Virus record (IMG/VR): IMGVR_UViG_3300022868_000009
Coordinates: 124,001 to 188,000 of that record
DNA: 64,000 bases
Direction: 5' to 3' (one strand)
In this document: positions 16,629 to 46,009 of the stretch, piece by piece
Position numbering within the stretch: position 1 is the first letter of the stretch
Layout: every line of letters begins with the position of its first letter
Position numbers and translations under genes: made by a program
Notes under the pieces: model-generated
What the model was told of the DNA's origin: nothing
Databases searched by the model: none
Seen by the model: only the letters and a program-made list of their open reading frames with translations

Positions 16629-16700
16629 GGTCCCGTAGCTCAGTGGAAGAGCAGAAGCTTCTAACCCTTTGTGTCGCTGGTTCAAATCCAGCCGGGACCG
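16629..16700 (+). tRNA. tRNA with CUA anticodon in canonical register (putative amber suppressor; Arg-TCT only if read out of register)
   Basis: GGTCCCG/CGGGACC, GCTC/GAGC, A26, GAAGC-TTCTAAC-CCTTT, GTGTC, GCTGG-TTCAAAT-CCAGC, G73. Confidence 0.75.
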
Positions 16701-17003
16701 CTATAACCTCATTATATTGGTTGTTCTATTATACTTAATAGTTTCTTTTTGTCTATTTACCCAATTAATTAATTCAGACTTAATTTCTTTATATCTTTCT
16801 TCTGTCATTTTATCATCATAAAACTCACCTTGTTCAATTTGATGATCATCAGATAACCAAAAATCGGAAACTAACTCATTTAATGTCTCCTCTAATTGTC
16901 TAAAATTAGTTTCAACACCATTCAAATAATATTTCTTTTGATTTACAGCCCATTCTTCATCTTCTTGAGTTACATTTTCATTATATTTCTTTAAATGTCT
17001 CAT
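16701..17003 (-). CDS. Putative capsid-internal protein
   Basis: MRHLKKYNE N-terminus. Confidence 0.6.
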   Translation of the reverse strand: MRHLKKYNENVTQEDEEWAVNQKKYYLNGVETNFRQLEETLNELVSDFWLSDDHQIEQGEFYDDKMTEERYKEIKSELINWVNRQKETIKYNRTTNIMRL

Positions 17004-37718: not shown

Positions 37719-38822
37719 ATGAAATTTGATTTTGACGACATTTTAATACAACCATCTACAATAACTGACATAGTAAGTAGAGATAATATTCCCGTATATG
37801 ATGAAAATGGTATGTTACCATTATTCACAGCACCAATGGACACGGTAGTGAATTTAACAAATTATAAAATATTTTTAGAAAATGGTATACGTGTTGTTTT
37901 ACCAAGGACAATAAATGATATTTATGATTTGCCTTATGATGAAAATTCAGAATATTTATGGTTTTCTTATGGTTTAAATGATATTGATAATTTATTTTTA
38001 TCTGATATAACTGGCACGAAAGTTGATTCAAGATCATATCTTATCCAAGATTATTTGAAAAATAATAGATTATTTATTTTAATTGACATAGCTAATGCTC
38101 ATATGACCAAATTACACAACCAAATCAAATCATTAAAAGATAAATATAATGATATGTTAGAAATAATGGTTGGTAATATAGCAAATCCAGAAACTTACAA
38201 AATATTATCTGATTTAGGTGTCTGGGGAGTTAGATGTACTATAGGAAACGGTTCAGGTTGCCTTACAACAGAAAAACTAGGTTTAGGTTACCCATCAGCA
38301 TCTTTAATAAATGAATGTTATGACATATCACTAACATTAAATAAACCGGCTAATATTATAATGGATGGTGGTTTAAAAGAAGATCGAGATTTTATTAAAA
38401 GTTTTGCACTAGGTGCAGATTTCTGTATGAGTGGTGGAGTCTTCAACAAAGCATTAGAAAGTTGTGCTGATACATACACACAAAATGTTAAACATGACTG
38501 GGGAACAGAACCTGGATCTTTAATTGATCAATATCATGAAGATACAGTTAAAATGTTTAAAAATGGTACAAAATTCTTTAAAAAATTTAGAGGAATGAGT
38601 ACTAAAGAAGTTCAAAAATCTTTAGGAAATAAAGTATTGAAAACATCCGAGGGTATAACTAAAATGAACCCTGTAGAATATACATTAGAAGGCTGGGTAG
38701 ATAACTTTAAACATTATTTAAGTTCTGCTATGTCATATACAAATAGTAATAATTTACAAGAATTTAAAGGTGTTAAATATAACATGATTACTCAAAACTC
38801 ATTTAAAAGATATAATAAATAA
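37719..38822 (+). CDS. IMP dehydrogenase / GMP reductase family protein
   Basis: FDDILIQP, APMDTV, IDIANAH, VGNIA, GNGSGCLT (catalytic Cys), DGG, FRGMS. Confidence 0.9.
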   Translation: MKFDFDDILIQPSTITDIVSRDNIPVYDENGMLPLFTAPMDTVVNLTNYKIFLENGIRVVLPRTINDIYDLPYDENSEYLWFSYGLNDIDNLFLSDITGTKVDSRSYLIQDYLKNNRLFILIDIANAHMTKLHNQIKSLKDKYNDMLEIMVGNIANPETYKILSDLGVWGVRCTIGNGSGCLTTEKLGLGYPSASLINECYDISLTLNKPANIIMDGGLKEDRDFIKSFALGADFCMSGGVFNKALESCADTYTQNVKHDWGTEPGSLIDQYHEDTVKMFKNGTKFFKKFRGMSTKEVQKSLGNKVLKTSEGITKMNPVEYTLEGWVDNFKHYLSSAMSYTNSNNLQEFKGVKYNMITQNSFKRYNK

Positions 38823-38936
38823 TATGATTAAACCAGGTGATATAGTAACGAAGTAAAAAATGGAAATTTTAAAGAATTTTTTATTTAATAGTATTTTATT
38901 AAATTTATAAGAATTTTTATCGAAAAACAGAGAAAC

Positions 38937-39446
38937 ATGAAAAACAGAGAAATCGAAAGAAAATGGTTAATAAATAAAAAAGATTTACCAGAACTAACAA
39001 AAATGCCTTATATTAATATAACACAAGGTTATATGAAAAGTGATGGTGAGCTTACAATAAGATTGAGACAATCTCTTTATATGAGATATTCAAATGATTT
39101 AATTGGTGAAGAATATACAATGACAATAAAAGGCGCTGGACTAAAAGATAGAGAAGAAAGAGAATCTGTTATTTGGAAGCCTCAATTTTCTACATTTTGG
39201 CCACTATGTCGAGAATACACAATACACAAACATAGATATGAATATACTGGCGTAAATAATAATATAATACAAATAGACATATTTAAAAATGAATTTAAAG
39301 ATCTTTATATGTTAGAAATAGAATTCAACACATTAAAAGAATGTGATGAATATGTATCAGAAGATTGGTTTGGTAAAGAAGTAACAGAAGACTTCAAATA
39401 TTCAAACTTTTATATGGCAGTAAACAAAAAACCTATTTTAATATAA
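38937..39446 (+). CDS. CYTH-domain triphosphatase
   Basis: EIERKW, QGY, KHRY, EIEF, WFGKEVTED..YSN. Confidence 0.88.
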   Translation: MKNREIERKWLINKKDLPELTKMPYINITQGYMKSDGELTIRLRQSLYMRYSNDLIGEEYTMTIKGAGLKDREERESVIWKPQFSTFWPLCREYTIHKHRYEYTGVNNNIIQIDIFKNEFKDLYMLEIEFNTLKECDEYVSEDWFGKEVTEDFKYSNFYMAVNKKPILI

Positions 39447-39460
39447 TTAATATACTTTTT

Positions 39461-39805
39461 ATGATTAAAAATTTTAAAATGTTTGATAATATTGATAAAT
39501 TCACAGAAATTATCAAATCAGAAATTAAATTAAGTGAAGAAAAATTCAAACTTAAAATTGAACCAGAAGATCAAGAAAAAGAAATAGATATTATAATTAA
39601 AACTTTTGGTGAATATGATTTCAGTAATGGTATTTCAAGTGAAATATATCAAAAATTGTTTAATGAAATAGTTACAAAAGTAAATAAATTATTAGATAAA
39701 CAATTAAATTATTATTTTTGCAATACTCCTGAAGGAGAAACAAAAACTAGGTATAATTGTCATTTACACAGTGTAATATTTAGATTATTTATCTTGCTTC
39801 AATAA
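39461..39805 (+). CDS. Hypothetical protein, capsid-targeting-like N-terminus
   Basis: MIKNFKMFD start. Confidence 0.55.
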   Translation: MIKNFKMFDNIDKFTEIIKSEIKLSEEKFKLKIEPEDQEKEIDIIIKTFGEYDFSNGISSEIYQKLFNEIVTKVNKLLDKQLNYYFCNTPEGETKTRYNCHLHSVIFRLFILLQ

Positions 39806-39814
39806 AATTAAAAA

Positions 39815-40081
39815 TTAAAAATCTCGTTCATATCTCCTAATTTTTTCTTTCCCAATTCTAATATCAAACTCTTTAAGAAATGAATTTGGTATTTTAATGT
39901 CATACTCTTCAAAATTTTTAAGTATCTCTAATCTCGTAAAATCACACTCTGAAATTCCTATACTCCACTCTTTTACCCAAAGTCCCCAACTCTTTTTACT
40001 TTTAATAACTCCATTTAATATGTTTGGATGTTTAGTATAAATTGGTTTATCTTTATATAAACCATTATCAAATTCTTTCAT
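39815..40081 (-). CDS. Hypothetical protein (frame stays open upstream to an ATA at 40291)
   Basis: 70 extra sense codons upstream without ATG/GTG/TTG. Confidence 0.5.
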   Translation of the reverse strand: MKEFDNGLYKDKPIYTKHPNILNGVIKSKKSWGLWVKEWSIGISECDFTRLEILKNFEEYDIKIPNSFLKEFDIRIGKEKIRRYERDF

Positions 40082-40297
40082 ACAGATTTTACAATTTTTA
40101 CCATTAATATCAAATATAATTTCAGGATTATACGTTCCAGAAAAGGAAAGTATATTGCATCGGTAAGATTTAAGAAAGAAACAAAATATTTCATTAAAAC
40201 TATTTGAATGTTTTTGTTTCTTCTTATTTTTTCTTGTTAGGCCTTTCTTATAAAGACCATCATTGCTTCCAGCATTTTCATAATCTTTTATTTATTT

Positions 40298-40528
40298 TTA
40301 GGTTGATATTTCAAACGTAGACCATGAAATTTTTCCAACATTTGAATATAAATTGTCTAATTTTTCAGCAAAATATTCAAACCATTGTTTATCTTCTTTT
40401 GTTAAAGTATATCCATTTTCTAATTTACTTTTATAATCTTTAATAACATTTAAGTCATTAAGAAATAAATAAAATGTTTCAGAATCAAGATTTTCTACTA
40501 TTTTATTAATATTATCTAAATCTTTCAT
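40298..40528 (-). CDS. Hypothetical protein
   Basis: ORF immediately after the tRNA array. Confidence 0.55.
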   Translation of the reverse strand: MKDLDNINKIVENLDSETFYLFLNDLNVIKDYKSKLENGYTLTKEDKQWFEYFAEKLDNLYSNVGKISWSTFEIST

Positions 40529-40529
40529 G

Positions 40530-40601
40530 TGGAGCCTACGGGAATCGAACCCGTGTCTTCTGAGTGCAAGTCAGAAATAATAGCCTCTATACGAAGGTCC
40601 C
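40530..40601 (-). tRNA. tRNA-Ala(TGC)
   Basis: TCTGA-CTTGCAC-TCAGA; G3:U70; T-arm ACGGG-TTCGATT-CCCGT. Confidence 0.85.
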
Positions 40602-40608
40602 ATTTTTG

Positions 40609-40682
40609 TACTCCCGATTGGACTCGAACCAACAACTTCTGCCATGTAACGGCAGCACTCTACGCAATTGAGCTACAGGAGC
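40609..40682 (-). tRNA. tRNA-Val(TAC)
   Basis: CTGCC-GTTACAT-GGCAG; full cloverleaf. Confidence 0.85.
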
Positions 40683-40687
40683 GTTTG

Positions 40688-40761
40688 TAGTCTCGATGAG
40701 ATTCGAACTCATGACCTCTTGCACGTCAAGCAAACACTCTAACCAACTGAGCTACGAAACT
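40688..40761 (-). tRNA. tRNA-Val(GAC)
   Basis: TTTGC-TTGACGT-GCAAG; full cloverleaf. Confidence 0.85.
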
Positions 40762-40765
40762 ATAG

Positions 40766-40836
40766 TACTCTCGAAGGGACTCGAACCCCCACTAAGGGTT
40801 TAGAAGACCCTTGTGCATCCATTACACCACGAAAGC
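40766..40836 (-). tRNA. tRNA-Arg(TCT)
   Basis: AGGGT-CTTCTAA-ACCCT; full cloverleaf. Confidence 0.85.
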
Positions 40837-40837
40837 A

Positions 40838-41575
40838 TTAACACATTTTCAATTTTTTAATTATATCACTAATAGTGCCTTTTGAAGCACAAAAATATTC
40901 AGCAATTTTAACTTGTTTAATATTTTGATTAAAATACATATCATAAACTTTTTCTCTATCAATTTTTGGTTGTTTATATTTCAAATTATTAGATTTTTCT
41001 ATAATTTCATCAAGATTTTCGTAGAAAAATTTTGAATCTGTATGTTTTATTGTGTGACAATTTCTACATATTATTTTACATTTATCTAATTCATTTTGTA
41101 CTTTTTCACTCAAATCTTTTATACTATCAAATCTACTAGTTATATCACTTAAAATAAAATCCTTATTTCTTTCATGATGAAAATTTAATGACGAATTACA
41201 TTTATTATATCCACATATATAACATTTATCATCACCTAAATATTTTAAATAAATGTGTTTGTTGTGTCTCTTATTAGAAACTTTGCCAATTTTTTCATGT
41301 AATTCTTGATGACAATTTTGACAATATAATTCACACTTTTTTAACTCTTTCTCTATTATATTCCAGCTATAATTTCTTAAAACATTTAATGATTCTTTTT
41401 TATCATCTATATGATGAAAACACAATTTTAATATATTATCTTCACCACACATTTTACAAGAACCACCAAGTAATTTAACTGCTTTGTACTTTTTAGCAAA
41501 AACTAATATTTTTGTTGATAATTTTTTCATGTTCGAGGTTTTAATTTTATATATTAAAATTAAAACCTCGAACAT
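40838..41575 (-). CDS. Tandem-HNH endonuclease with C-terminal HTH, inserted in the tRNA array (probable start 41530)
   Basis: Two CxxCG..LxFHH..CxxxCxNCH units. Confidence 0.8.
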   Translation of the reverse strand: MFEVLILIYKIKTSNMKKLSTKILVFAKKYKAVKLLGGSCKMCGEDNILKLCFHHIDDKKESLNVLRNYSWNIIEKELKKCELYCQNCHQELHEKIGKVSNKRHNKHIYLKYLGDDKCYICGYNKCNSSLNFHHERNKDFILSDITSRFDSIKDLSEKVQNELDKCKIICRNCHTIKHTDSKFFYENLDEIIEKSNNLKYKQPKIDREKVYDMYFNQNIKQVKIAEYFCASKGTISDIIKKLKMC

Positions 41576-41579
41576 GAAA
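41525..41579. repeat. Perfect 25-bp inverted repeat covering the HNH start codon and promoter motif
   Basis: tttcatgttcgaggttttaatttta-tatat-taaaattaaaacctcgaacatgaaa. Confidence 0.9.
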
Positions 41580-41583
41580 TTTG

Positions 41584-41657
41584 AGCGAATGAACGGATTC
41601 GAACCGTCACCTCAACTTTGGAAGAGTTATATGCTAACCATTAAACACCACATTCGC
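41584..41657 (-). tRNA. tRNA-Gly(TCC)
   Basis: GCGAATG/CATTCGC, U73, TAACT-CTTCCAA-AGTTG. Confidence 0.85.
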
Positions 41658-41667
41658 TTATTTCTTG

Positions 41668-41740
41668 ATCCCCCTGTCGGAATCGAGCCGACTTCCCCGA
41701 TTTACAAGACCGGACATAATCCATTAAATGCTTAGGAGGA
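41668..41740 (-). tRNA. tRNA-Thr(TGT)
   Basis: CCGGT-CTTGTAA-ATCGG; TCCTCCT/AGGGGGA acceptor stem. Confidence 0.8.
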
Positions 41741-41748
41741 ATATATAG

Positions 41749-41828
41749 AACCCCAAGTGGGACTCGAACCCACATTTTCAATTCCAATTACCGATAACTG
41801 TTTCGAAGACAGAACGGATTACTGAGGT
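41749..41828 (-). tRNA. Atypical D-armless tRNA-like RNA, TCG (Arg) anticodon loop
   Basis: ACCTCAG/TTGGGGT acceptor, CTGT-CTTCGAA-ACAG, long variable region, GTGGG-TTCGAGT-CCCAC. Confidence 0.65.
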
Positions 41829-41837
41829 ATTTATTTG

Positions 41838-41911
41838 TATAAGCGGTGAGAGTCGAACTCACAATAATCCTCAGTCCAAGTGAGGCAACCACGCCAATGG
41901 ATCGCGCCTAT
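41838..41911 (-). tRNA. tRNA-Pro(TGG), atypical acceptor stem
   Basis: CCTCA-CTTGGAC-TGAGG; ATAGGCG/CGCTTAT; GTGAG-TTCGACT-CTCAC. Confidence 0.75.
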
Positions 41912-41943
41912 ATTATTACAAAAAATCAAAGAACTTACTCCAG

Positions 41944-41988
41944 AAAACAAAAAACCTCAACCAATGGTTTGAAACACTGGTCGAGGTT
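41944..41988 (-). terminator. Attenuator terminator upstream of the tRNA array
   Basis: AACCTCGACCAGTG/CATTGGTTGAGGTT stem followed by TTTTGTTTT. Confidence 0.8.
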
Positions 41989-42013
41989 GTGGTTTGATAT
42001 ATGGAGGATTAAA

Positions 42014-42121
42014 TTACAAATCCTCAAACTCTAACAGTGTAGGTATAACGGTGCCGGCCACGGGTCTCGTCGGAGTCCCTGTGCGTACTACTACTGCCAT
42101 TATGTTAAAGTTTAAATTCAT
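42014..42121 (-). promoter_or_regulatory. Putative attenuator leader peptide MNLNFNIMAVVVRTGTPTRPVAGTVIPTLLEFEDL
   Basis: 35-codon ORF with GC-rich core restricted to A/V/R/T/G/P; 3' end complementary to the terminator 5' arm. Confidence 0.75.
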
Positions 42122-42219
42122 TTTTATATCAATTTTTTCGTATTATTATATATTGACCGTAAAAAGTCAAATTTTTCTATTTTTATATTTATCACAAAAG
42201 TAGTTAAAAGTTTTTAAAA

Positions 42220-43050
42220 TTAAAAATTTTTTGTCATTTTATTTTCAAAAAAGGAAAACAACTTTGATATATATCGAGAATAATTTTTTATTTGATTGTT
42301 GTAGATTTTTAAAAAGTTATCTATAAATAATTTTTGTTCTTTTTTAGAAGAATTATTTATAAATAATTCTTCTTCTTCACCATGTTTTAATTTTTTTAAT
42401 AATTCAAACGCTGATAAAAATTTGTTCAATTTAAGTTCTGATAAATCATTAAAAAGTTGCAATAAATTTATATCCTTTAAATAATAAAAATTTTGATAAA
42501 AATCGCTTTTTTTAACTAAATTATCAATTGTTTCATTTTCATTTAATTCATAATTTTTTATTTCGTAAACAATTTTACTAAAATCCGCTTTTACTTCAGC
42601 TGACGATAAAGAATAAAACACATCTATGATTGTAGATATTTGTTTATCATTTTTAAAAAAATCATACATTGAAATTATTGACATTTCATCAACACTTGTT
42701 AATTCTTTGCCTTTATTTTTCACCCAATCATAAGCATGAAACAATTCGTGATTTAATAATCCATGAGTTGTCTTATATGAATCTAAAACCAAATATATAA
42801 TCGAACCATTTGGAATATATTCTGATTTATGTTGATCAAATGATGAAAATCTATTATTCAATTTTGCATAATCTTCTTTGAATTCTATAATTATTTTGGA
42901 TATACCTATATTAAGTATTTTAACATCTATTTCTTCAATATTTTTTAAATCCTCTTTATTTTCAACATAATTTATTATATAAGTAGTTAATTCTTCAACT
43001 TCTGTTGAATATCCTGATCTTTCTATAATAAAATTACCAAAATTTAACAT
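42220..43050 (-). CDS. Zincin-like protein with capsid-targeting-like N-terminus
   Basis: MLNFGNFIIE; HELFHAY (HExxH) plus downstream Glu. Confidence 0.6.
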   Translation of the reverse strand: MLNFGNFIIERSGYSTEVEELTTYIINYVENKEDLKNIEEIDVKILNIGISKIIIEFKEDYAKLNNRFSSFDQHKSEYIPNGSIIYLVLDSYKTTHGLLNHELFHAYDWVKNKGKELTSVDEMSIISMYDFFKNDKQISTIIDVFYSLSSAEVKADFSKIVYEIKNYELNENETIDNLVKKSDFYQNFYYLKDINLLQLFNDLSELKLNKFLSAFELLKKLKHGEEEELFINNSSKKEQKLFIDNFLKIYNNQIKNYSRYISKLFSFFENKMTKNF

Positions 43051-44193: not shown

Positions 44194-45258
44194 TTATACC
44201 TCCAAATAATTAAAAGGTCCTTTAATACCTTTATTTAACAATACTTTATACAATAATTTTATTGCATCTTTTACGTCTTTTTTATGAACAGTTTCTACTG
44301 TTGTGTGCATATATCTCATACCCATTTTCAATAATCCTGTTGGAATACCATGAGGATAAGAATAAGAATCTGCATTTGTTCCTGAACTTCGTCCCATCGC
44401 AATTAATTGATAGGGTAATTTCTCATCATTGCAAACATCTTTCAAAAGTTTTAAAACATTCTTGTGAATAGATGGAGCATTAGCCAAAACAATACCTTCA
44501 CCAGCAGTTATAGATCCTAATTTAGCAGCATCATATGCTGGACTTGTAGTGTCATGTGTCACATCAATTGCAATCGCAACATTAGGTTCTATTTTATTTG
44601 AAGCCATTTTAGCGCCATATAAACCTACTTCTTCTTGAACTGCATTAACAATAACTAATTTATAGTCAAGTTTTATTTTCTTTTTACTCAATTTCTTTAG
44701 AACTTGTGATGTAATATAACCACCGATTTTATCATCTAATGATCTACCACAATGATATTCTCCTAAATCCATATAACCATCTGTCATTGTAATAGGAGTT
44801 CCAACCTCAATTCCTTTATCTAAAACTTCTTTTTTACTTGAAACACCAATATCAATAAAACACTTACTTATTTCTACTTTAAATGTCTTATCTTGAACGT
44901 GAATGGCTGGATGACCAAAAACACCATTAACTTTACCTTTTTCACTCCAAATATCAACCCTAGATGAAGGAGTAATATGCACATCAGAACCTCCAAGTCT
45001 ACCAACTTTGATAAAGCCTTTATCAGTTATATCATGTACAAAAAATCCAATTTCGTCAGCATGAGCATCAATTAAAACAGTATAATCGCTGTTTAAGTCA
45101 CCAAAATATGCATATGCGTTACCATAATCATCAACATCTACTTTTTTAGCATATTGTTTAATATAGTTAACCCACACCATTTGACCACCAAGTAAAACTT
45201 CATACCCACTAGGTGATGGTGTATTAACGTATTTTTTCAAAAATTCTTTTTTATTCAT
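44194..45258 (-). CDS. M42 family aminopeptidase
   Basis: PSGYE, AHADEIG, LDDKIG, QEEVGLYGA, IDVTH, GTNAD, YMHT. Confidence 0.92.
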   Translation of the reverse strand: MNKKEFLKKYVNTPSPSGYEVLLGGQMVWVNYIKQYAKKVDVDDYGNAYAYFGDLNSDYTVLIDAHADEIGFFVHDITDKGFIKVGRLGGSDVHITPSSRVDIWSEKGKVNGVFGHPAIHVQDKTFKVEISKCFIDIGVSSKKEVLDKGIEVGTPITMTDGYMDLGEYHCGRSLDDKIGGYITSQVLKKLSKKKIKLDYKLVIVNAVQEEVGLYGAKMASNKIEPNVAIAIDVTHDTTSPAYDAAKLGSITAGEGIVLANAPSIHKNVLKLLKDVCNDEKLPYQLIAMGRSSGTNADSYSYPHGIPTGLLKMGMRYMHTTVETVHKKDVKDAIKLLYKVLLNKGIKGPFNYLEV

Positions 45259-45319
45259 ATTTATGATTTTAATTATTAATTGAGAAATTTAAGGAAATTT
45301 TTAGAATAAAAAAATATTA

Positions 45320-46009
45320 TTAATAATTCATTATTAATAGTTCTTCGTGATAAGAATATTTTTTCTTAACGATGTTACAGAATTTAGAGTATTCTGGTAC
45401 TAGATAAAAATCATAACAAGATAACATGAACTTACCTTTAATGTTTTTTAATAAGAAAAATAAATCTTCATGTGATTCCTTTGTAAAATCATGATTATCG
45501 TATCTATGTTCAAAACCATAATACGGTGGGTCAATATAGAAAAATGTATTTCTATAATCGAATTTATTTATCACATATTTATAATCTTCGTTTAATACGT
45601 AATTTACATATTGATATTTATCTTTAAAATCTGATATATTACCCCAAGACATTTTATCACTATAACCAGATCCAATATCTCCAACCGCATTACAATGACA
45701 TAATAAATATAAATATTTCAAAGATTTTTCTTGTTGAGTTCCTTCATTAATAGTGTCTTTAAATTCAAGATATTTTTCTTCACTTGATTCTATATTCTCA
45801 ATTAGATTTGTAAAATGTGGGTTTTTTAAGTGTCGAAATAAATAATAATTATCTTTATTAATATCATTATATACACTAATAAGAGGATTGTTAATTGACA
45901 ATCCTATTCCATACATACCACCAAAAGGTTCAACATAACATGTAAAGTTAGGTGTGTAAGGCAAAATGAATTTTTTAAATTTGGATTTTTCTCCAAGATA
46001 GGGTATCAT
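45320..46009 (-). CDS. Second Dam-like DNA adenine methyltransferase
   Basis: YLGEKS, YVEPFGG, YNDIN, YIDPPY. Confidence 0.85.
   Translation of the reverse strand: MIPYLGEKSKFKKFILPYTPNFTCYVEPFGGMYGIGLSINNPLISVYNDINKDNYYLFRHLKNPHFTNLIENIESSEEKYLEFKDTINEGTQQEKSLKYLYLLCHCNAVGDIGSGYSDKMSWGNISDFKDKYQYVNYVLNEDYKYVINKFDYRNTFFYIDPPYYGFEHRYDNHDFTKESHEDLFFLLKNIKGKFMLSCYDFYLVPEYSKFCNIVKKKYSYHEELLIMNY

Follow-up and report, generated by a model that had tools for sequence, protein, structure and literature searches.

Leader peptides and terminators preceding tRNA arrays in huge phages suggest attenuation control of tRNA genes

Why should a phage place a very short open reading frame and a strong transcription terminator directly in front of its own tRNA genes? 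This question is raised by a locus within a 64,000-nucleotide stretch of IMG/VR record IMGVR_UViG_3300022868_000009 (positions 124,001 to 188,000 of that record; hereafter the window), which comes from a 345-kb, 25% GC huge phage with 35 tRNA genes. The initial annotation noted that the core of a 35-codon minus-strand ORF uses only Ala, Val, Arg, Thr, Gly and Pro, the specificities of the tRNA genes downstream of it, and proposed a ribosome-mediated attenuator that senses tRNA depletion. Our analyses confirm the observation and support this interpretation. The features of the locus are collected in Table 1.

Table 1. Features of the leader and tRNA array, in window coordinates.
Feature	Position	Strand	Description
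Promoter motif	42145..42170	-	TTGACT/TGACTTTTT at 42170-42161 and AATATATAAT at 42154-42145; expected transcript start about 15 nt before the ATG
Leader ORF	42014..42121	-	35 codons, ATG to TAA; A-rich start context, no Shine-Dalgarno
Region 1	42103..42113	-	AAACUUUAACA, codons 3-6; pairs with region 2 in the untranslated RNA
Sensor run	42047..42097	-	AVVVRTGTPTRPVAGTV, codons 9-25
Region 2	42026..42040	-	5' strand of the antiterminator, in the tail of the ORF: ACACUG 42040-42035, GAG 42031-42029
Inner hairpin	42004..42025	-	GAGGAUU/AAUCCUC, enclosed by the antiterminator; stop codon UAA (42016-42014) in its loop
Intrinsic terminator	41944..41988	-	Region 3 at 41988-41975 (CAGUGU 41979-41974 and CUC pair with region 2), region 4 at 41967-41953, U-run to 41944; 14 bp, -20.3 kcal/mol
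tRNA-Pro (TGG)	41837..41911	-	First gene of the array, 42 nt after the terminator stem
tRNA-like element	41749..41828	-	UCG anticodon loop; acceptor, anticodon and T arms but no D arm; 20-nt insert in the variable region
tRNA-Thr (TGT) and tRNA-Gly (TCC)	41583..41740	-	Thr at 41740-41667, Gly at 41657-41583
Hairpin and inserted ORF	40838..41578	-	53-nt near-perfect hairpin (41578-41526) and ORF of about 230-245 aa with CxxC and HH motifs, splitting the array
Distal block	40529..40836	-	tRNA-Arg (TCT), Val (GAC), Val (TAC) and Ala (TGC)

To establish what the leader precedes, we first examined the array. ARAGORN calls the Pro, Thr, Gly, Arg (TCT), Val, Val and Ala genes on the same strand as the ORF. 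The Arg-like TCG element scores 26.7 bits against the Rfam tRNA model, below the 29-bit threshold, and ARAGORN does not call it, even with relaxed settings. Rfam's tRNA model finds the Gly gene but misses the Pro and Thr genes; three of the four proximal tRNAs are atypical or below threshold for Rfam. The counterpart array in a related 735-kb phage starts with a regular tRNA-Arg(TCG). The inserted ORF looks like an HNH-type homing endonuclease, although this is inferred from its motifs, as Pfam gives only a weak helix-turn-helix (MarR) match; the hairpin beside it shows up as spurious microRNA hits. Only the distal block supplies the Val, Ala and AGA-Arg identities present in the sensor. This block lies beyond the 740-nt inserted ORF, which contains chance-level promoter-like sites, so its co-transcription with the proximal genes is not shown.

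We next evaluated the leader itself. A consensus promoter scan gives TTGACT-17-AATAAT upstream of the ORF and no promoter-like site between the terminator and the first tRNA. The promoter stretch recurs in the genome; the strict motif occurs only at the heads of three tRNA arrays in the 345-kb genome, and a looser copy precedes a capsid-like gene. The lack of a Shine-Dalgarno is in keeping with the phage's other genes, as only 5% of its long ORFs have a Shine-Dalgarno-like 4-mer, the same as random windows. Of 34 leader residues, 19 are in the array's set, against a proteome background of 0.239 (binomial P = 6e-5). The core is written largely in codons that are rare for this genome, with a geometric-mean synonymous share of 0.109 against 0.40 for the same peptide in genome-typical codons, and none of 20000 draws was as low. 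The pairings proposed in the initial annotation between ACACUG and CAGUGU and between GAG and CUC, together with the inner hairpin, are present as described. For this unit alone, however, the antiterminator duplex is only modestly better than shuffles (-10.9 against -6.9 ± 1.9 kcal/mol, p 0.035), and it is the family-level statistics that make the case.

A blastn search for the leader against 50,697 phage records gave only chance hits. Searches with an exact 18-mer and the neighbouring protein found only a near-identical IMG/VR contig whose leader is 100% identical and hence uninformative, and contigs of four DNA runs aligned to 41500-42300 showed no variants in the leader. In contrast to the single case considered in the initial annotation, the unit belongs to a widespread, often nested family. 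The same genome has four more such units, whose leaders carry runs such as SKSKK before Lys, Lys, Ser, Ser, or L/N/I/M/E runs before Leu, Leu, Ile, Glu, Asn, Ile, Met, and the cross-matrix of leaders against arrays is diagonal-dominant. One tRNA region of this genome (313-322 kb) has no such units. Four related huge phages (462-735 kb) have about 22 more. In a genome-wide scan of 82 terminator-like hairpins, the full geometry occurs at six places, five of which are the tRNA leaders.

The initial annotation had named the absence of composition-matched leaders at homologous arrays as a result that would refute it, and this test was passed strongly. With fixed criteria applied to the five genomes (29 units, with 27 usable), 388 of 783 leader residues are in the set of downstream tRNA identities, against 174.6 ± 19.3 when leaders and arrays are re-paired (z 11.1; 0 of 200000 permutations reach it). 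The match is specific to the reading frame, with frames +1 and +2 giving only 0.24 and 0.21. Of the downstream identities, 98% are present in the leader, against 62% in permuted pairings, and leaders internal to arrays match downstream identities rather than upstream-only ones. To replicate this we used 56 IMG/VR loci fetched after the criteria were fixed, in which 19 new units gave z 5.2 (0 of 200000). The match lies at the level of tRNA identity and not of codons: seven C/U-ending core codons of the window unit are not readable by the array's anticodons under strict wobble, and across the family 87% of sensor codons are readable against 83% expected from codon usage. The exception is the counterpart in the 735-kb phage, where a leader rich in T, P, A, V, R and G precedes an Arg/Thr/Val/Ala/Gly/Pro array and its codons are nearly all directly readable by that array's anticodons.

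Given that attenuation requires a mutually exclusive antiterminator, we tested whether the tail of each ORF pairs with the 5' arm of its own terminator. This duplex averages -11.2 kcal/mol, against -6.0 for dinucleotide shuffles (sd of round means 0.31) and -6.2 for foreign arms, and the replication set behaves the same. We then scanned the position of a ribosome along each leader. The 5' arm is sequestered (P about 0.7-1.0) while the A site is on or before the sensor, and this falls to about 0.1 just after. In the window, P is 0.69 up to codon 23, 0.56 at codon 24 and 0.11 from codon 25, the end of the core. The fraction of residues matching the array is 0.80-0.83 in the ten codons before the switch and 0.37/0.22 after it, with 0.60-0.65 against 0.24 in the replication set. 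In the naked window leader, minimum-free-energy folds pair region 1 with region 2 and the 5' arm is sequestered with P = 0.12, indicating that untranslated RNA would also terminate, as in trp; most other family members lack this pairing and read through when untranslated (mean P 0.68). At equilibrium the terminator of the window unit dominates (P 0.98), so antitermination would have to be kinetic.

These data allow us to propose a mechanism, in which we place a confidence of about 0.85, whereby the locus is a ribosome-mediated transcription attenuator with a block of phage tRNA genes as its output. In this model transcription starts at the phage promoter (about 42140) and a ribosome begins translating the leader. 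If aminoacyl-tRNAs for Ala, Val, Arg, Thr, Gly and Pro are plentiful, the ribosome runs through the sensor and covers region 2, the terminator forms, and the transcript ends before tRNA-Pro. If any of these tRNAs is scarce, the ribosome stalls inside codons 9-24, region 2 stays free to pair with the 5' arm of the terminator as soon as it is made, and RNA polymerase reads into the array. The new tRNAs would then relieve the stall, closing a negative feedback loop on tRNA supply. In the absence of transcript, 3'-end or ribosome data, translation of the leader is inferred from comparative evidence, and the direction of regulation is also inferred. The trigger is likewise an inference: the initial annotation named anticodon nucleases or starvation, but a simple closed feedback loop on tRNA supply explains the design equally well. 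Consistent with the feasibility of such a mechanism, an engineered hisL-lux attenuator responds to deletion or overexpression of individual tRNA genes (PMC8129111), although its output is luciferase and it has no feedback.

An alternative, which we consider unlikely, is that the module works as described but reports amino-acid starvation or poor charging rather than tRNA abundance, or acts mainly as a timer that switches the arrays on when host tRNA synthesis stops after infection. A stalled ribosome cannot tell a missing tRNA from an uncharged one, as is established for the trp and his attenuators, and because most units read through when untranslated, any general drop in translation would also open them. 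Against this, making more tRNA does not cure amino-acid starvation, and the exact, directional match between each leader and the genes behind it makes sense only if the product feeds back on the signal.

Two readings that dispense with translation are far less probable. The leader could be a small structured non-coding RNA with its own promoter and terminator, its amino-acid content being a by-product of GC-rich sequence: the core is 65% GC in a 25% GC genome, GC-rich triplets encode A, G, P, R, T and V by default, and the leader folds better than shuffles (z -2.9 to -4.6). However, no Rfam 15 family matches the leader at E ≤ 10 or at gathering thresholds, and the other family members are AT-rich and sense N, I, K, L, Q, F, Y and others with the same architecture. 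Moreover, the match is frame-specific, and frame, start and stop position relative to the terminator are conserved. Alternatively, the in-frame triplets could bind tRNA anticodons directly, as a T-box-like or sponge-like RNA, and the leader does contain triplets complementary to the array's anticodons. Yet no T-box (RF00230) match was found at E ≤ 10 over 39500-43000, and codon-level complementarity is no better than expected from synonymous usage. The triplets are contiguous and in one frame, from an ATG to a stop placed 18-33 nt before the terminator in most units, and the structural switch point is defined by a ribosome footprint.

The architecture resembles the leader-peptide attenuators of amino-acid operons (trpL, hisL, pheL, leuL, and the multi-amino-acid thrL and ilvL/ivbL of enterobacteria) in its short ORF with a run of regulatory codons, its intrinsic terminator, its antiterminator using the terminator's 5' arm, and a stop codon that parks the ribosome on region 2. 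It differs in that the output is tRNA genes rather than biosynthetic enzymes, the sensors mix up to about 20 amino acids and mirror the gene list downstream, and units are nested inside arrays right after a tRNA, without a promoter; in many units the gap between terminator and first tRNA is only 7-35 nt. The pheM leader of E. coli pheST also has a component of the translation apparatus as output, but it regulates a synthetase for one amino acid and is neither an RNA product nor a closed loop on tRNA amount. T-box riboswitches likewise read tRNA status and choose between a terminator and an antiterminator upstream of translation-related genes, but a T-box binds one uncharged tRNA directly through one specifier codon and needs no ribosome. 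The tRNA clusters of phages T4 and T5 are similarly tandem and interrupted by homing-endonuclease genes and small stable RNAs, but the same detection procedure finds no matching leader-terminator unit in front of their tRNAs. In our literature searches we found no published description of leader-peptide control of tRNA genes, and the huge-phage paper (PMC7162821) has no occurrence of 'attenuat', 'leader' or 'terminator'.

A broader possibility, which we hold more likely than not but with less confidence than the mechanism itself, is that huge phages of this lineage run their near-complete tRNA sets as a hierarchy of closed-loop supply controllers. Every array and sub-array would be gated by a leader peptide listing exactly the tRNAs behind it, so that the phage senses, identity by identity, which tRNAs the infected cell lacks, whether through host shut-off, tRNA-cleaving defences or codon mismatch, and makes only those. 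This would be the first natural attenuator with tRNA genes as output, and a compact, programmable sensor of individual tRNA pools.

The findings provide a simple annotation rule for huge-phage genomes, in that a short ORF before a terminator before tRNAs predicts the operon's content. The proposed mechanism extends classical attenuation, until now a device for amino-acid metabolism and a few synthetases, to RNA products and to sensors of many amino acids at once, arranged in nested series. Why phages carry tRNAs has been argued for decades, with codon compensation, host tRNA decay and escape from tRNA-cleaving defences all proposed. A regulator that turns phage tRNA genes on when ribosomes stall for those tRNAs would show that the phage treats tRNA supply as a measured, limiting quantity, and would also tell us, for each array, which tRNAs the phage expects to lack.

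The window (bases 124001-188000) belongs to a 344,634-bp IMG/VR virus record that has 25% GC and carries 35 tRNA genes in several arrays, plus two tRNAs with a CUA anticodon. An M42 aminopeptidase gene lying 2 kb upstream of the leader-tRNA unit has its closest relatives in the 462-735 kb 'uncultured phage' genomes LR756500, LR745206, LR756504 and LR756501. The 634-735 kb genomes are those of the huge-phage study, which places genomes of that size in the Mahaphage clade with predicted Bacteroidetes hosts (PMC7162821). The phage's DNA occurs in salt-lake and marine metagenomes. TAG ends only 19 of 244 long ORFs in the genome, so partial TAG recoding is possible, and the CUA tRNA within the window is a candidate amber suppressor.

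The initial annotation had proposed that a short leader ORF, a terminator and an alternative antiterminator control the tRNA array, and every element that it described is present in the sequence. The core of the ORF, AVVVRTGTPTRPVAGTV, corresponds to codons 9-25 and uses codons that are rare for this genome, more so than any of 20000 synonymous re-drawings. Downstream, ARAGORN calls Pro, Thr and Gly, then, after an inserted ORF, Arg, Val, Val and Ala. The terminator is a 14-bp, -20.3 kcal/mol hairpin with a U-run, and the proposed antiterminator pairs lie where they had been placed. The element that had been described as Arg-like TCG is a sub-threshold tRNA-like sequence. Co-transcription of the distal Arg-Val-Val-Ala block across the inserted ORF is not shown; however, V, A and AGA-Arg in the sensor are supplied only by that block. 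No terminator-like site follows the array, and small protein genes may therefore be co-transcribed with the tRNAs and share the attenuator's control.

Features of the window and of the remainder of the genome; positions are those of the window unless marked as genome
Feature	Position	Strand	Description
Leader ORF	42121-42014	-	Core at codons 9-25
Region 1:2 pairing	42113-42103 with 42036-26		Pairing within the leader of the window unit
tRNA-Thr and tRNA-Pro	41667-41740 and 41837-41911	-	Called by ARAGORN but not reported by Rfam's tRNA model even at E ≤ 10; A/U-rich acceptor stems with G-U pairs; tRNA-Thr also has an odd T loop (CUCGAUU)
tRNA-like element	41749-41828	-	UCG anticodon loop, no D arm, 20-nt insert in the variable region; could be a decayed tRNA-Arg(TCG), which the 735-kb relative has intact at the head of its array, or an unusual functional or decoy tRNA
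Palindromic hairpin	41526-41578		53 nt, near-perfect, right after tRNA-Gly and overlapping the start of the inserted ORF; spurious microRNA hits in Rfam; may be a processing site or part of the mobile insert
Inserted ORF	40838-41575	-	Paired CxxC and HH motifs; looks like an HNH homing endonuclease inside the tRNA array, much as segB in T4; Pfam gives only a weak helix-turn-helix match
76-codon ORF	40298-40528	-	Starts at the base immediately after the 3' end of tRNA-Ala
Auxiliary genes around the array	37719-39446 and 44194-46009		IMPDH/GMP-reductase-like protein, CYTH-domain protein, M42 aminopeptidase and D12-class adenine methyltransferase (Pfam)
CUA-anticodon tRNA	16629-16701	+	Labelled 'Pyl' by ARAGORN; 60.9 bits against Rfam tRNA; second copy outside the window
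Match to GOLLD RNA (RF02032)	genome 112548-113016 (L091 749-1217)	+	93.9 bits, E 9e-25, below the gathering score of 150; second CUA tRNA embedded in it; behind the same promoter motif (genome 111968) that heads the window's array, and just upstream of the His/Trp/Phe attenuator
Short ORF, antiterminator and terminator	genome 235030-235073	-	17-codon ORF, duplex -11.6 kcal/mol; far from any tRNA
Further set of nine tRNA genes	genome 313-323 kb	+	Lys, Glu, Tyr, Pro, Phe, Arg, Gln, Met, Leu, largely duplicating identities found elsewhere; no leader-terminator units; may belong to a different expression class

Searches for the leader sequence itself found only a near-identical contig. The promoter stretch of the leader, however, recurs in the genome, with one copy in front of another tRNA array, and behind that copy lie a short ORF and a terminator. 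We then scanned the upstream region of every tRNA in the genome and found five promoter/ORF/terminator units, in each of which the leader spells the tRNAs that follow. An F/K/H/S/W run precedes His, Trp, Phe (then Lys, Lys, Ser, Ser), and SKSKK precedes Lys, Lys, Ser, Ser. A D/Q/C/L/I/E/N leader precedes Asp, Gln, Cys, Leu, Leu, Ile, Glu, Asn, Ile, Met, whereas an L/N/I/M/E leader inside that array precedes only Leu, Leu, Ile, Glu, Asn, Ile, Met. In the tRNA regions of the four related huge phages the same design recurs about 22 times: QQIQQQQ precedes three tRNA-Gln genes, SYESYYEE precedes Glu/Tyr, KKKK precedes Lys genes, LSLCLSLSLSL precedes Leu, Leu, Ser, Cys, Ser, and IAMIIRMRIIR precedes Arg, Ile, Met. 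The 735-kb phage has a counterpart of the window unit, with a leader rich in T, P, A, V, R and G that precedes an Arg/Thr/Val/Ala/Gly/Pro array. Nearly every sensor codon there is directly readable by that array's larger anticodon set. In contrast, the C/U-ending rare codons of the window's core are not strictly readable by the array's U-starting anticodons; we infer that they may make the sensor more sensitive, or depend on host tRNAs, or be a legacy of the richer isoacceptor set still present in the 735-kb relative.

To evaluate this correspondence we fixed the criteria as an ATG ORF of 10-61 codons, ending 5-45 nt before a hairpin plus T-run, within 450 nt upstream of a tRNA, which gave 29 units in five genomes. 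Of 783 leader residues, 388 belong to the identities of the downstream same-strand tRNAs. Re-pairing leaders and arrays gives 174.6 ± 19.3 (z 11.1), and none of 200000 permutations reaches the observed value. The other two reading frames give 0.24 and 0.21, against 0.50 in frame. Of the downstream identities, 98% are represented in the leader, against 62% when permuted, and leaders inside arrays match what lies downstream, not what lies upstream. For the window unit alone, 19 of 34 residues match against a proteome background of 0.239 (P = 6e-5). After fixing the criteria we fetched 56 further IMG/VR loci through the M42 gene, and these yielded 19 new units with the same property (z 5.2, 0 of 200000). 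Examples are FSFPFP before Pro, Phe, and long leaders that sample about 20 amino acids before arrays of about 20 identities.

We next examined the mechanism by folding each unit with the terminator's 3' arm left out. Under these conditions the 5' arm pairs with the tail of the leader ORF in nearly every unit. The tail/arm duplex averages -11.2 kcal/mol, whereas dinucleotide shuffles give -6.0 and arms of other units give -6.2; the replication set gives -10.6 against -6.4. We then moved a ribosome footprint codon by codon along each leader, and found that the 5' arm stays sequestered while the A site is on or before the sensor and is released just after it. In the window the probability is 0.69 up to codon 23, 0.56 at codon 24 and 0.11 from codon 25, which is exactly the end of the core. 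Across units, 80-83% of the ten codons before this structural switch are sensor codons, against 37% and 22% after it, and the replication set gives 60-65% against 24%. The two quantities are computed independently, one from folding and one from tRNA identity, and their coincidence is the strongest mechanistic evidence. At equilibrium the terminator wins, so the choice must be kinetic, as is established for trp. In most units the untranslated RNA also forms the antiterminator (mean 0.68), and the logic there is simply that fast translation terminates. The window unit is one of the few with a region 1:2 pairing, which lowers this value to 0.12 and gives the full trp-type four-region design.

Several further points support this model. 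The phage does not use Shine-Dalgarno sequences (5% of ORFs, equal to random), and the leader's bare A-rich start is therefore normal for it. Units at the heads of arrays carry lineage-specific promoter motifs, including Bacteroidota-type TAnnTTTG in two relatives, whereas internal units follow a tRNA directly, with no promoter. In this genome the strict promoter motif occurs only at three array heads. The terminator-to-tRNA gap is often 7-35 nt, leaving no room for a promoter, and none is predicted in the window's 42-nt gap. Of 82 terminator-like hairpins in the genome, the full geometry is found at six places, five of them the tRNA leaders. The T4 and T5 tRNA regions have no such units.

Given that a 65% GC stretch in a 25% GC genome encodes A, G, P, R, T and V almost by default, we initially treated the ORF as a chance reading of a structured RNA. 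No Rfam family matches, however, and the other leaders of this genome are AT-rich, so GC content is not the explanation. Translation of the leader, the 3' ends and the response to tRNA levels are nonetheless inferred, without RNA data. The initial annotation had suggested defence nucleases or starvation as the trigger, but on the present evidence this cannot be told apart from a plain supply feedback or an infection timer.

An engineered hisL reporter shows that attenuators do respond to tRNA gene dosage (PMC8129111). We found no description of the present device in full-text literature searches. The device works like, and meets the sequence-level criteria of, leader-peptide attenuators (trp, his, thr, ilv, pheST). 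It differs from them in that its output is tRNA genes, in that it senses many amino acids at once, mirroring the downstream gene list, in that it is nested inside arrays, and in that most members use a two-state design.
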